Both the position numbers and the translations under genes were made by a program. The notes beneath the pieces were generated by a model. That model was not told the origin of the DNA and did no database searches. It worked only from the letters and a program-made list of their open reading frames with translations. From Anaeramoeba ignava BMAN (lineage: Eukaryota; Protista; Anaeramoebae), in contig JAPDFW010000022.1 of NCBI GenBank assembly GCA_028826165.1, forward strand, positions 310,001-374,000: DNA of 64,000 nucleotides, in the 5' to 3' direction. This document shows positions 55,495-63,340 of this stretch, piece after piece. The number at the start of each line of letters is the position of its first letter. Within the stretch, counting starts at the first letter, position 1.

Positions 55495-58353
55495 ATGACA
55501 AGTTTAACAGCATTTCATCAAGTAAGAGTTGTTCAACTTGGTTTTTTTTCGAAAAATATAATATTAGAATTAAATGAAGATTTAACAGTTACAGTTTTAG
55601 ATTTAAAAGATCTCAAAATCATCAAAAAAAAAACTCAAATCAAAAAATTTGAAAAAAGATTTGATTCTCCACAATTAAGAGTTTGGTATACTAAACAAAA
55701 GAAACCAGAAGAATACGAATTTGAGACTGGAACTGCAAGAGAACGATTTTGTGAGGCAATAACTCGATTAAAAGAACAAATTGAAAATGAAAAAAATCAC
55801 TTACATTTACCGCTTGTCAGATTTCAAAGAAAAGCAACAAAAGAAAAGTCAACAGAAAAATTTCGCATTTTTACTGGTTCTTGGAATATGGCTGAAAATC
55901 CTCCGCCTGATGATTTATCTCCTTGGATTCCTACTAATATTTTTGATATTTATGCTTTTTCTCTTCAAGAAAGTAATTATTCAATTCCGTTAAAAGAAAA
56001 TGAAGAAAAAAAACCAATTTCTTGTGAGGATAATTTGCTTGAAAGATTCCAATCTCATCTTGGAAGAAAATATACTAAAGTTGCTTATCAATCAATGCAT
56101 ATGATTCGTTTGTTTATTTTTATTAAGAAAACACTTAAACATACAATTTCAAGTATTGATAGTAATTATGTAATGACTGGAGTTGGTGGACTTTTTGGAA
56201 ACAAAGGAGGTTGATATTTAAAATCAATATTCAAAATATTTAATTTAAATATTCAATTTAAATATTCAATTTAAATATTCAAAATAATTATTCAAAATAA
56301 ATATTTAAAACATTTAAAATATTCAAAATATTTAAAATATTCAATTTAAAATAATATTCAAAATAATATTTAAAATAATATTTAAAATCAATATTTAATT
56401 TAATATTCAAAATATTTAAAATAATATTCAAAATAATATTTAAAATAATATTTAAAATATTCAAAATAAATATTTAATTTAAATATTTAATTTAAATATT
56501 CAAAATAATTATTCAAAATAAATATTTAAAATATTTAATTTAAATATTCAAAATATTTAAAATAATATTTAAAATCAATATTTATTCAAAATAAATATTT
56601 AATTTAAATATTTAAAATCAATATTCAAAATAAATATTTAAAATAAGTATTCAAAATAAATATTTATTTAATATTTATATTCAAAAATCTATTAGGTGTT
56701 TTGATTTCTTTTAAAATTGATCATACTCCTGTTTGCTTTATTTCAAGTCATCTTGCTGCTCATATTGAAAATGTTTCCCAAAGAAATCAAGATTATGCAA
56801 GTATTGTTGAGAAAGCTAAAGTTGGATTACCAATCTTTGATATTTTTAATCAATTTCATCATATTTTTTGGATGGGTGATTTAAATTATAGACTTGATGT
56901 TAAAAGAGAAAATCCAATTAAAAGAGTCATTTCTGAAATTGAAAAAAAAAATTATGAAGGTTTATTAGAAGCTGACCAATTAACTCTTGAAATGAAACAA
57001 AGAAGAGTATTTCAAGGATTTGTTGAACCTCATCCTTCTTTTCCACCAACTTATAAATATAATATTGAAGTTATTCCAATGACAATATCATCATTTATTC
57101 GAAAATCATTAGATTTAACTCATCAAAATCAAATTCAAAATCAAATTCAAAATCAAAATCAAATTGAAAATGAAAATGAAAATGAAAATCAAATTCAAAA
57201 TGAAAATCAAAATGAAAATCAAATTGAAAATGAAAATGAAAATCAAAATCAAAATCAAAATCAAAATCAAAATCAAAATGAAAATCAAAATCAAAATCAA
57301 AATCAAAATCAAAATCAAAATCAAAATCAAAATCAAAATGAAAATGAAAATCAAATTCAAAATGAAAATCAAATTGAAAATCAAAATCAAATTGAAAATG
57401 AAAACAAAAACAAAAATGAAAATCAAATTGAAAATGAAAATCAAAATCAAAATCAAAATCAAAATCAAAATGAAAATCAAAATCAAAATCAAAATCAAAA
57501 TCAAAATCAAAATCAAAATCAAAATCAAAATCAAAATCAAAATCAAAATCAAAATCAAAATCAAATTGAAAATAATCCAAAAAAAGTTTCTTTTAATGAA
57601 ATTCAAAAAAATGAAAATAATCCAAAAAAAGTTTCTTTTAATGAAAATCAAATTTATGATCATTCAAGAATTTATTCAAAACAAAGAAATCGAGTTCCTT
57701 CATGGTGTGATAGAATTTTAACTAGATCATTCCCAAACACAAAAATCAAAAGAACAAGTTATTCATGTTGTGATGATATTAGAACAAGTGATCATTCCCC
57801 AATTTATAGTACATTTGAAATTGAAACACTTCTTCCACCTCCACCTCAAAGTATTTTTTCAGGAATTGTTGGATTATCATGTGGAATAATCATTTCAAAT
57901 CTTAAAGGAAAAGACTTGAAATCAAATAACACTTACTTGACTTTCAATGCATCTTTTTTGGAAAGCAAAATTGACACATCAATTGTGAAAAAAACAAACG
58001 ATCCCATTTGGAAAAATCCCGATTTTTATATTTTAACTCCTCTTCATTCAAATGCAAATTATCTTATCAAATCATTTATTCATATCACAGTTAATGATCC
58101 TGATTTGGTAAAAAAGAATGATTGTGTTGGTTGGGGTATTATTAGTTTGGCAAAAGCTTGTGAAAAAGATCCTGTTAATTTTACTGCTAAAATTTCTAAA
58201 TATACTCAATCTTGTGGTAAAATTACTGGAAATGTTCAAGTTATTTGGACTAATGATAATGATTATTTCCAAAATTTATTACGTTCAAGAAATGTTTCCA
58301 AAAAAGGAAAAAAACAAAAAAATATAAAAAACAAAACCAATAGAAAAAATTAA
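55495..58353 (+). CDS. Inositol polyphosphate 5-phosphatase (SHIP-like layout: PH-like region, 5-phosphatase, C2-like tail); intron 56210-56695
   Basis: FTGSWNM, GNKGGV, HLAAH, FWMGDLNYR, PPTYKY, PSWCDRIL and SDHSP catalytic motifs. Confidence 0.92.
56215..56685. repeat. Degenerate ~12-bp A/T repeat filling the 5-phosphatase intron
   Basis: aatattcaaaat/aatatttaaaat variants. Confidence 0.75.
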
Positions 58354-58408: not shown

Positions 58409-61400
58409 CTATTTTTTTTTTCGAAATTGTTTCACTAAAAATTGAACAAATTTTATAAATGGTTTTCCAATCTTATTAATTTGATTTTGATCAAGACTAA
58501 TAAATTGAGTTAATAAAGAAATTGAAACTGGTGGTTCAAGTGCCATTTTATTAAGAATTTCATCTGTAAAACCTGAAATATCAATTGAATCATCTCTATT
58601 TTTTAATTCTTGAAGTTTTTCAATGAAACTTTCTTTTAATATAATTTGATTTTGATTTAAAGTTGTTTTTCTTTTCGGTTTTTTTTGAATTTGATTTTGA
58701 TTTTCATTTTGATTTTGATTTTGATTTTGATTTTCATTTTCATTTTCATTTTCATTAAAAAGTTGGTTAAATAAATCATCTTCATATTCTTTTCTTTTTT
58801 GTCTTTTTTTCTTTTTTTCAATTTTTGGATTTTTTTGATTTGATTGATTTTTTTCAAGTTTTGCATAACAAATCTCAATATTTGAATTTTTCCATCTCTC
58901 TTTATACAGTGAAGAAAGAACATAAAGTAAATAAAATTTGTGAGTTTCTTCTTTAAAACAATATTGCTCAAGAATAATTCCATTGTAAATCATTTCACGA
59001 AAAACTCGACGAGAAAAATAATCAATTTGAACTGATTGATTTTTTGGTTTTGGCCATTTTTGATATCTGAAATAATTTAGTTTATTTAGAGAAGGTGATT
59101 CAATTTCACTCAAAATTTGATTTTCAGTCATTCCTTCAGGCTTTTTTTTCATCAAGTTAACAATTTTTTGTATTTTATTTTCAATAACTTCTGGATGATA
59201 TTTTTTGATTTGAATATTCCTTTTTTGGTTTATGCAAACATCGCAATAATCTTCACAATTCGGGACAATTTCATCTTCTTGGAAATGCTTTGAAATATAA
59301 CTTTTGCGACAAACAGAAATATTATCACAAAATCTCATCATTTCATCAACTAGTCGAACTTGGTGAATTTTTGTTGGAATTTGTTGATTCTGGTTCTCAT
59401 TTTCAAATTTCACTTCAGATTTGTGATCGTGTTGAATTATAAACGTTTTTTGATTTGGATCGTTTTTTTTAGGAGCAAAAAAATTGATGAGAAATTTGAA
59501 TCGATCTTGAGGAGTATAGAACAAAGTGCATGTTGCTTTCTCACCATTTCTGCCAGCTCTTCCGCACTGCTGATAATAATCCTCAAGCGAAAAAGGGATT
59601 GAGTGATGGATCACAAAGGAAACATCTTTTTTGTCAATTCCCATTCCAAATGCAGATGTTGCTATCATCACTTTGATTTTTCCTTTGATCCAATTTTCTT
59701 GCGCTCTTTTCTTCTCTTCAACTGGCAAATCGCTGTAATATAATTTATACTTGATTTCTTTTCCTTTGAGATGCGAGCCAAGTTTTATGCAATCTCTTAC
59801 TGAAAAGCAATAAACAATCCCTGTTTTTGATTTGTATTCAGTTTGGATTAGTTTATATATTTGTTCATTCACATTCTTTTTTTCTTCGATATTAAACACC
59901 AAATTTTTGCGAAATGATGGGAGTCGAAAGTATTGGCAATTCCGCAATCTAAGAGTTTGCGAAACATCCAAAATCACTCGCTTTGTTGCTGTTGCTGTCA
60001 ATGCAATAATTGGTACATTTGGGAATTTTTCTCGAAGATTTTTTAATCTCCCATATGAGGGTCTGAAATTATGTCCCCACATACTAACACAATGTGCTTC
60101 ATCAATGGCAAAGCGATTGATCAGCTTGTTGTTATTAAAAGAAATCAGTAGATTGTTTATTGAACTATTCAAATCAAGTTTTTCTGGTGAAATGTATATA
60201 AATTTAGGAATTTTATTTTTCTTCAAATTTTCACGAATCATTTCCTCTTGTTTTCTTAATTCGTTCCTGTCGAGCGAACACAACTTAATTGCATAAATTC
60301 CTTTACTCTCAAGATAATTAACCTGATCTTCTATCAATGAAATCAGCGGTGAAACAACAACAACAATTCCTTTCAAAACAAGACCAGGCAATTGATAACA
60401 AAGTGAATTGTGAGTAACTGTGCAATCTGAAAGCAAATATCGGTGATTTTGATCAATTTCAAATCCATAATATTCTTCAAAATTGCGTATTTTAACTTCG
60501 AATTCGGTTAGAACATACTTGTTTTGTTTTTTCTTATTCATTAATAATTTAACTTCCAAAATATTTTTTTCTAAATCAACAATTTGCTCCATTTTAATCC
60601 CCAACGAACGAATAATAAATTGAATATCAGATGAAATTTCAAAATCAACATTTGGGATTCTCAAACAAATTTCAACTTGTTTTCCTTTTTTGTTTCTTTT
60701 GCAGAAAAAATTGTGTCCATTTGAGTTTTTTTCAAGTGAATTGATAAATCCTTTCAAAAAACGTTTCCGAACTTTTTGGCTATTAATTTTGTATTCATTT
60801 CCAATTCCAATTCCATTATTTTTAATATTTCTCACAATTTTTTCTCCAAATTCAAAACCCATTTTATAAGGATCAAAAAAAGTTGGTTTAATTGGAAAAT
60901 TAACAGGAATTTGATATAAATAGCATTGATTTTTCCATTTTCTTGATTTAGTTAAATATTCACCAATTGATATTTGAATAATTTCATTTTTTCCTTTATG
61001 AAACAGTGTTAGAATATGAGAAAGTGTTGCTGTAAATTTGTTTCCATATTTTGGGATAATTTCAAATATCCAATCCTTTCCTCTAAAAAGTTTTTTCACA
61101 ACTCTTGGTTTATTATCATCACCCATTAGCAAATCTTTTGTTTGAATTTCTTGAACTTTTTTGATATTCCCATTATAAAGTAATATTTTTGTGTCTTTTC
61201 CATGACATTTTCCTTTATTTTTAGTTTTAAAAAGAATTGATCCAAATATTATGATTTTTTAAGATTAAAAAAAAAAGCAATAAAAAAAGAGTAAAATTTT
61301 GGTAAATTGTTTGTGTTTCTTTTTTCTTGACAAAAGCCACTTACCATAACCAGTTGGCATAACAACAAAAATATCTTTTTTTTTAATTGATGTATTCATG

Positions 61401-63340
61401 ATTTCAATTTGTTTATCTCTAAAATTGTGAATTCCAAAAATTGATTTTGCTTGTTTTATCATTTTATCTGTTCCTTTATTTTTTTTAGTAAATTCAGGAT
61501 CAAATGAAAGAACTTCTTGTAAATTTATTATATTTTTCTCTTGAAGAAAAGTTTTGTTTGCTTGATTATTTTCAATAAATTGATTATTTTGAATATTTTG
61601 AATATTTTTATTATTTTGATTATTTTGAATAAATTGATTATTTTTATTATTTTCAATAAATTGATTATTTTTATTATTTTGATTATTTTTATTATTTTGA
61701 ATAAATTGATTATTTTCATTATTTTTATTATTTTGAATAAATTGATTATTTTCATTATTTTCAATAAATTGATTATTTTTATTATTTTGATTATTTTGAT
61801 TATTTTCAATAAATTGATTATTTTTATTATTTTGATTATTTTGAATAAATTGATTATTTTCATTATTTTTATTATTTTGAATAAATTGATTATTTTTATT
61901 ATTTTCATTATTTTCATTATTTTGATTAAATTGATTATTTTGAATATTTTGAATATTTTGATTATTTTGAATATTTTGATTATTTTGATTATTTTGAATA
62001 AATTTATTATTTTCAATAAATTGATTATTTTCATTATTTTCAATAAATTGATTATTTTTATTATTTTGATTATTTTGATTATTTTCAATAAATTGATTAT
62101 TTTGATTATTTTCATTATTTTGATTAAATTGATTATTTTGATTATTTTTATTATTTTGATTAAATCTTAATTGAAGTCGAGAAATTAGATTTAAAGGAAT
62201 TTTTAAATTTGTTTCTAATTTTTGATTATTTTGATTATTATTTTGATTATTATTTTGATTATTATTAAATTGAATATTTTTGAATTGATAATTTTGCTTT
62301 TCTTTAAATTTATTATTTTGGTTTAATTTTAAAGGAAATCGAGAAAGTAAATTTAAAGGTATTTTTAAATTTTTTTGTAATTTTGGGTTATTATTATTTT
62401 GATGATTATTTTGAATATTATTTTGAATATTATTTTGAATATTATTTTGATTATTATTTTGGTTATTATTTTTATTTTGATTATTATTTTGAATATTATT
62501 TTGAATATTATTTTGAATATTATTATTTTGATTATTTTGAATATTATTTTGATTATTATTTTGATTATTTTGATTATTATTTTGATTATTATTTTGATTA
62601 TTATTATTTTGGTTATTATTTTTATTTTGATTATTATTTTGAATATTATTTTTGATTATTTTGAATATTGATTTTGATTATTATTTTGGTTATTATTTTG
62701 ATTATTTTGAATATTATTTTGAATATTATTTTGAATATTATTTTGAATATTATTTTGAATATTATTATTTTGATTATTTTGAATATTATTTTGAATATTA
62801 TTTTGAATATTATTTTGAATATTATTTTGATTATTATTTTGATTATTATTTTTTTGGTTATTTTTTTGATTTAATTTTAAAGAAGATTGAGAAAGTAAAT
62901 TTAAAGGTAATTTTGTATTATTTTGATTATTGTTATCATCTCTGTTAAATTGAATATTTTTAAATTGGCTATATTGATTAAATTGAATAGTTTTAACTGG
63001 AATAGATTGGTTGGATTGAGTATTTTGGAATTGATTGAATTGATTGAATTGATTAAATTGAATAGTTTTAACTGGAATAGATTTATTTTCATTATTTTCA
63101 TTATTTTGATTATTTTGATTTAATTTTAATGGAGATTTAGAAATGAAATTTAAAGATATTTTTGGATTTGTTTGTAATTTTTGGTTATTTTGATTATTAA
63201 ATTTTTTTTGTTTTATTTTGAATATCTCTAAATTCATTATTTTTGTCAAGATTTCGGTTTGTTTTATAAATATTTGGATCAAAAGTAAATAACTTAAAAT
63301 CATATTGATCAACAAAATTGATATCTTTTTTTCCATTTAT
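58409..63340 (-). CDS. RecQ-family (BLM/Sgs1-like) DNA helicase containing an intein; intron 61344-61213; N/Q-rich N-terminus with apparent frameshifts, may extend past the window
   Basis: FGIHNFRDKQ, MPTGYGK|SLCYQLP, VSPLISLIEDQ, DEAHCVSMWGHNFRP, ALTATAT, GIVYC, ATSAFGMGIDK, YYQQCGRAGRNG; RQC zinc motif CR..CEDYCDVC; HRDC-like tail. Confidence 0.93.
60407..61207 (-). mobile_element. Intein (267 aa) with degenerate LAGLIDADG homing endonuclease region, inserted in RecQ Walker A
   Basis: Block A CHGKDTKILLYNG, block B FTATLSHIL (TxxH), blocks F/G YYGFEIDQNHRYLLSDCTVTHN followed by Ser+1; removal restores PTGYGKSLCYQLP. Confidence 0.95.

Follow-up and report, generated by a model that had tools for sequence, protein, structure and literature searches.

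The stretch of DNA analysed here, referred to below as the window, comprises 64,000 nucleotides (nt) of contig JAPDFW010000022.1 of Anaeramoeba ignava BMAN (assembly GCA_028826165.1, positions 310,001 to 374,000 of the forward strand). On its minus strand it carries a gene for a RecQ helicase whose Walker A motif is split by an in-frame insert of 801 nt (61207..60407) with the features of a class-1 intein. The GC content of the window is 13-24%, in a genome of about 80% A+T (80.65% A+T has been published for this strain, PMC11550330). Exon 1 of the RecQ gene extends from an ATG at 61462 to 61345 on the minus strand, its 3′ end reading ATG CCA ACT GGT TAT G, and exon 2 opens with GA AAA TGT, which gives the spliced reading PTGYGK/C (a slash marks insertion or splice borders throughout). 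The stop codon of the host gene lies at 58409-58411, minus strand. In the order of transcription, the features of the gene are as follows.

61345..61462, minus strand: exon 1, the end of the N-extein, which holds RecQ motif 0 and in which Walker A begins (MIKQAKSIFGIHNFRDKQIEIMNTSIKKKDIFVVMPTGY, then the initial base of a Gly codon); residues 17-40 give a weak Pfam DEAD match.

61213..61344, minus strand: spliceosomal intron of 132 nt (GTAAGT...AAAG), in phase 1 within the Gly codon of GK; an intron of the same site and phase occurs in the intein-free paralogue C38.

61208..61212, minus strand: the 5 nt (GA AAA) at the start of exon 2, which complete the Gly codon and encode the Walker A Lys, residue -1 of the intein.

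60878..61207, minus strand: intein residues 1-110, the N-terminal part of the Hint domain, with Cys1 (block A) and T61-x-x-H64 (block B); assigned from Pfam Hom_end_hint, the matches to PI-SceI and Prp8 inteins, the invariant residues C1, T6 and H64, and the structural model.

60524..60877, minus strand: intein residues 111-228, a LAGLIDADG homing endonuclease remnant; assigned from the lack of a Hom_end/LAGLIDADG Pfam match, the gap at alignment columns 340-425, and secondary structure.

60407..60523, minus strand: intein residues 229-267, the C-terminal part of the Hint domain, with blocks F and G (YYGFEID...RYLLSDCTVTHN), His266 and Asn267; assigned from the termini of the Protein Data Bank (PDB) matches and the alignment of sister inteins.

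58412..60406, minus strand: C-extein of 665 amino acids from Ser+1 (SLCYQLPG), with the RecQ core (DEAH, Helicase_C, RecQ Zn-binding) and a C-terminal tail; assigned from TIGR00614 and Pfam.

The insert is placed between the Lys and the Ser of the RecQ Walker A motif (PTGYGK/C…THN/SLCYQLPG), its Cys1 codon following the 3′ end of the intron at a distance of 5 nt. It starts with CHGKDTKILLYNG, contains T61-L-S-H64 in its middle and ends with YYGFEIDQNHRYLLSDCTVTHN, directly followed by SLCYQLPGLVLK. An earlier note, made from the letters of the window, had placed an intein at 60407-61207, and these coordinates, together with all the motifs it quoted (PTGYGK, SLCYQLP, the Cys start, TxxH and THN before Ser), proved correct on re-reading. 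The program-made list of open reading frames (ORFs) starts this frame at 61132 (TTG) solely through its start-codon rule; the frame in fact extends past the listed start, as had been noted, back to an in-frame stop at 61265-61267 inside the adjacent intron. All 267 codons of the insert are stop-free and in frame with the host. At the composition of this DNA (per-codon stop probability 0.098) the chance of such a frame is about 1e-12, and none of 20,000 shuffles of the insert stayed open, so that a chance origin of the open frame is excluded; the other two frames of the insert hold 11 and 34 stops. The GC content of the insert is 25.6%, compared with 22.9% and 28.5% for the exons and 19.7% for the intron.

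Both sequence and structural comparisons identify the insert as an intein. The Hint domain postulated in the earlier note was recovered by Pfam Hom_end_hint (PF05203), which matches the insert with 58.7 bits, the gathering cut-off being 32.1. A phmmer search of the PDB sequences matched PI-SceI, the VMA1 intein of the yeast Saccharomyces cerevisiae, together with Prp8 inteins of fungi, with both termini aligned. The AlphaFold2 model of the intein, for which 31 sister sequences from the same genome served as input, reached a mean predicted local distance difference test score (pLDDT) of 92.9 and a predicted template modelling score (pTM) of 0.89. Its top Foldseek match is again PI-SceI (E 7e-17, TMq 0.76), followed by Prp8 inteins (TMt 0.84-0.87), and further matches include many other inteins (gp41-1, GyrA and RecA among them) as well as Hedgehog Hint domains. 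The columns that are invariant in the alignment of the 31 sister inteins (C1, T6, H64, G248, H266 and N267) are all kept in the RecQ intein. The class-1 splicing residues claimed for it were all located, and the set is complete: Cys1, the TxxH motif (T61-L-S-H64), the penultimate His266, the terminal Asn267 and Ser+1. The RecQ intein is likely to be competent for splicing. A class-3 intein, which has no nucleophile at position 1 and relies on a block F Cys and a WCT triad, was ruled out, because Cys1 is present and block F (YYGFEID) is devoid of Cys.

The C-extein of the host protein matches TIGR00614 (recQ_fam) with 341.4 bits (cut-off 219.8) over model positions 40-429, and position 40, where the match begins, is directly past the Walker A Lys. 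Pfam DEAD, Helicase_C and RecQ_Zn_bind are all found above their cut-offs, and DEAH, QxxGRAGR and the Zn-binding cysteines are kept. When exon 2 was used as query against a large protein collection, the best 120 matches were helicases of the RecQ/BLM/Sgs1 type, none of which contains the insert, and 101 of them carry the unbroken motif TGxGK-S[LIM]C[YF]Q. Excision of exactly 267 residues would restore the consensus of the family, since GYGK followed by SLCYQLPG fits the TGxGK-SLCYQ of the homologues; alignment with insert-free RecQ proteins, which read GK-SLCYQ without interruption, places the site exactly at GK/S. The gene is nuclear, as the earlier note had it, and contains a spliceosomal intron. 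At the 5′ side, the frame of exon 1 is open for about 390 codons upstream of its first ATG (61463-62640, minus strand), running through an Asn/Gln-rich repeat (NNQFIENN...), and the true start codon of RecQ is therefore uncertain; additional exons upstream of exon 1 are possible.

We interpret the 801 nt as a class-1 intein, of the VMA1-Prp8 type found in eukaryotes and viruses, whose host is a BLM/Sgs1-like RecQ helicase encoded in the nucleus of A. ignava and whose site is the Walker A motif of this helicase, and we give this explanation as a whole, excision included, a probability of roughly 90%. According to it, the mRNA would lose only the 132-nt intron and the 801-nt insert would be translated, giving a precursor that could not form a working P-loop before splicing. 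Excision would follow the usual four-step route of an N-S acyl shift at Cys1, transesterification to Ser+1, cyclisation of Asn267 and a final O-N shift, whereby ...PTGYGK would be ligated to SLCYQLPG.... Ligation would yield an active RecQ helicase, the ATPase activity of which would depend on excision of the intein.

A few observations weigh against this interpretation. The Walker A motif of the host reads GYGK, whereas its homologues mostly have GGGK or GAGK, and the extein of the window gene (C13) forms the longest branch among the four RecQ paralogues of the genome (2.27 versus 0.8-1.1); the RecQ host may be under somewhat relaxed constraint. In a single public sequencing run that matches this DNA (run X1, of either RNA or DNA), no contig covers 60938-61540, i.e., the intron and the N-terminal junction of the intein. 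Furthermore, experimental demonstrations of splicing are limited to three other inteins of Anaeramoeba (PMC10710043). The long branch and the unusual Walker A, together with the presence of three other RecQ paralogues that could supply the function and with the decay already seen in the homing endonuclease (see below), are also what would be expected of a genuine intein by descent that has lost splicing, carried by a decaying or neofunctionalised RecQ copy whose ATPase is permanently split. We regard this as improbable, as the copy retains every splicing residue that is invariant in the 31 sister inteins, keeps a 933-codon frame intact in DNA of about 75-80% A+T, and preserves the DEAH, QxxGRAGR and Zn-binding signatures with a recQ_fam score of 341 bits.

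The RecQ intein belongs to a large family within its genome. A scan of the 42.8 Mb of assembly (147 contigs) revealed at least 40 separate Hom_end_hint matches, and a search with the RecQ intein returned about 70 matching stretches, from which the 31 complete sister inteins were extracted. Most of these stand directly after the GK of a Walker A loop (GK/S or GK/T), and their hosts, besides RecQ, appear to include EF1A-like GTPases, an IF2-like GTPase, AAA+ proteins, XPB, dynein, SMC, Lon, MCM and SR-alpha. Sites outside Walker A also exist: three CX5R phosphatases (L010, L026 and L029, on C71, C1 and C102) are interrupted in their catalytic loop (VAVH/C...HN/CKAGLGRTGT), and a P-type ATPase (L049, C55) in its DKTGT motif (DK/C...HN/TGTLTQNK). 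The Prp8 gene on contig C98 contains inteins at VMDL/..​/CQVF, ../CWKA and AKWK/../TAEE; Prp8 sites b, d and f, together with two VMA inteins, were found in the genome. The earlier note had mentioned large intein expansions in Anaeramoeba, and this holds for the very source of the window: with dozens of Hint matches in our scan, the genome is that of A. ignava BMAN, for which 103 inteins have been published, most of them in proteins of replication, recombination and repair (Gallot-Lavallée et al., PNAS 2023, PMC10710043). In that work the BMAN Prp8 carries five inteins, including one at the novel site Prp8-f (AKWK/TAEE) described for this strain only, and 'cluster 15', a promiscuous group with relatives among VMA, Prp8 and viral inteins, occupies 28 sites in 24 proteins (PMC10710043). 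The family of the RecQ intein, with its at least 31 members in this genome, matches this cluster 15.

Two further RecQ paralogues harbour inteins at the same site as the window gene, namely C93 (PTGGGK/CHAKNT...VTHN/SLCYQLPAIL) and C62 (PTGGGK/CHPKGT...VTHN/SLCYQLPSLV). The three RecQ inteins cluster together in a quick maximum-likelihood tree, with a Shimodaira-Hasegawa-like approximate likelihood ratio test (SH-aLRT) value of 88, and they are 36-43% identical to each other, compared with 44-53% for their helicase cores. These values fit either an early acquisition that was then passed on through gene duplication or an ancient spread from paralogue to paralogue, and not recent homing.

Residues 111-228 of the RecQ intein are what is left of its homing endonuclease. 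They include two LAGLIDADG-like helices, DPYKMGFEFGEK (112-123) and RFLKGFINSLEKN (149-161), the second of which is followed in the AlphaFold2 model by one beta-beta-alpha-beta-beta half. The DNA-binding sheets of the first half-domain, present in longer relatives, are deleted here (alignment columns 340-425), and the second motif reads GFINSLE instead of the canonical G-x-I-D-x-D-G. Pfam Hom_end/LAGLIDADG finds no match in this intein, whereas 13 of the 31 sisters have a Hom_end match. Neither the sequence nor the model contains a recognisable complete, active two-motif LAGLIDADG endonuclease; the domain is probably a decayed remnant, and because of this decay the element would now be fixed, being inherited vertically and no longer mobile. 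It might be argued that the intein still moves by means of a functional homing endonuclease and that its homing among the RecQ paralogues is recent, given that three of them are occupied at one site, that the two LAGLIDADG-like helices each have an acidic residue at one end (E122 and E159), and that spread between paralogues has been reported in this genome (PMC10710043). We find this very hard to accept, in view of the missing Pfam match and DNA-binding sheets, of the intron 5 nt upstream, which disrupts the target site in the window gene, and of the identity among the three RecQ inteins, which is below that of their exteins; any spread between paralogues must be ancient, since the inteins are less alike than the proteins that carry them.

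The proposal that the 801 nt are spliced out of the RNA as a spliceosomal intron and never translated has in its favour a true intron only 5 nt away, an intron-bearing and extremely A+T-rich genome, and the lack of run X1 contigs at the N-terminal junction, but it is next to untenable and, at the level of the sequence, already refuted, as the insert begins with TGT and ends with AAT, contains no usable GT-AG pair (its borders have a single GT...AG pair within 12 nt, and this would yield GKFTHNSLCYQ, not GKS), has a GC content that is exon-like and not that of the true intron, keeps its 267 codons open (P about 1e-12), exceeds the Pfam cut-off for a Hint domain, and is entered by run X1 contigs, of which one (58972-60570) spans the C-terminal junction at 60407 unbroken while others extend to 60937. 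Run X1 also differs from the window in a few places within the intein. At 60793, where the endonuclease remnant has its GIGIGNEY loop, a contig carries a 12-nt in-frame insertion (TTCATTTCCAAT, plus strand), and single-base differences are found at 60577, 60599 and 60798; these reflect either strain or allele variation or a difference in assembly.

The close neighbourhood of intron and intein in the window gene can be compared with other loci of the genome. The fourth RecQ paralogue, C38 (C38:34301-35119), has no intein; it carries a 71-nt intron (C38:34060-34130; L064:1260-1330) identical in position and phase to that of the window gene, its junction reading ...GGA GGA G / intron / GA AAA TCA TTA TGT TAT CAA. 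This shared intron position in an intein-free paralogue may be a new detail. In two other hosts the Walker A Lys codon and the Cys1 codon of a sister intein are separated exactly by a GT-AG intron: an SR-alpha-like gene on C75 has one of 89 nt (L033:1412-1500, plus strand) and an MCM-like gene on C71 one of 317 nt (L005:2326-2642, minus strand). Past the C-terminal junction, the first 30 nt are free of introns in all 31 sister inteins. The published work describes introns at empty intein sites and interprets them as homing barriers; introns near intein sites were noted as well, and a mutual exclusivity of introns and inteins was reported (PMC10710043). A mechanistic link between the two elements at this site is conceivable, although we consider it unlikely. 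An intron could be born at a homing site cut by the endonuclease, through double-strand-break repair with filler DNA, or else an intein could invade an intron-split site by recognising the downstream half-site only; if true, either variant would break the reported mutual exclusivity. The extein tree of the four RecQ paralogues gives no resolved branching, and for this reason neither the order of intron gain and intein events nor a sister relationship of C13 and C38 can be given.

Note also that the splice donor of the window intron (G/GTAAGT), if read unspliced, encodes Gly-Lys (GGT AAG), so that GK is encoded both before and after the intron (61339-61345 and 61208-61212, minus strand). An intein-free GK-S site would start with these same letters, GGT AAG T, which may be a coincidence. 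Downstream of the RecQ gene and convergent with it, a plus-strand ORF (56701-58353) has the look of an inositol polyphosphate 5-phosphatase (WMGDLNYRLD, SWCDRIL) that is interrupted by an extended low-complexity stretch of NQ/NE. A loose end of run X1 with a run of A at 58560 may correspond to a poly(A) tail.

Among eukaryotes, nuclear inteins are rare. With its Walker A split by an intein, a DNA-repair helicase would be dependent on protein splicing. The RecQ intein described here adds a further example to what has already been published for this genome, where P-loops and ATPases of replication and repair account for many of the 103 inteins (PMC10710043). What it contributes is the documentation of RecQ as an intein host, with three of four paralogues occupied at one site that was absent from the other collections scanned. 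The four genes also offer a natural comparison at a single site, with intein and intron in one, an intein without the intron in two, and the intron without an intein in one, a set on which the published idea of intron gain blocking intein homing could be tested.

With the published intein set of A. ignava BMAN, the RecQ intein has in common the genome, the VMA/Prp8/virus-like type, the many non-homologous hosts and the frequent occurrence in DNA replication and repair proteins (PMC10710043). It differs from the P-loop inteins of 'cluster 1' in that paper, which are described as class 3 with atypical N-termini, as it possesses Cys1 and belongs to class 1 (PMC10710043). RecQ, BLM, Sgs1, WRN and KOG0351 are not named in the main text of that paper; its Dataset S1 very probably lists this RecQ intein. 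No natural RecQ intein is named in the literature that we searched, a paper on Desulfonema having both words, not together. A degenerate DNA pattern for HN/S-L-C-Y-Q-L-P, which covered TCN serine codons only and is to that extent not exhaustive, gave one match in prokaryote genomes, none in viral contigs and three in metagenomes, all of them chance matches without an open frame. Inteins in RecQ seem to be restricted to this organism.

An exhaustive HMMER search with the intein yielded 6484 relatives outside the genome, and no RecQ context occurs among the best 150 of them. The closest are found in metagenomic proteins (P0001-P0010; 31-48% identity, E 1e-50 to 1e-33), which resemble the RecQ case in that many have their inteins at the GK/T or GK/S of P-loops, often two per protein; judged from their motifs, the exteins would be superfamily 2 (SF2) helicases and packaging ATPases of large DNA viruses. 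The prokaryotic P-loop inteins (DnaB-b, MCM-a and RFC-S) likewise reside in Walker A directly after GK, with Ser or Thr at position +1, in replication and repair ATPases; their hosts are prokaryotic and the intein lineages unrelated, and the main text of that paper does not name RecQ as a host (Novikova et al., 2016, PMC4760082).

Among structurally characterised inteins, PI-SceI (PDB 1DFA, 1VDE and 1LWS) is the best match in both sequence and structure, sharing the Hom_end_hint splicing domain, Cys1 and the His-Asn terminus. Differently from the RecQ intein, with its 267 amino acids, half-deleted endonuclease and Ser at position +1, PI-SceI has 454 amino acids, a complete and active two-motif LAGLIDADG endonuclease and Cys at +1, and the two also differ in host and insertion site. 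The Prp8 mini-inteins of Cryptococcus (PDB 6MWY and 6MX6) are shorter, occupy another site in a spliceosomal host and have no such endonuclease remnant. They are similar to the RecQ intein in being eukaryotic and nuclear, in their Hint subtype (TMt 0.84-0.87; phmmer E about 1e-4) and in the loss of endonuclease function.

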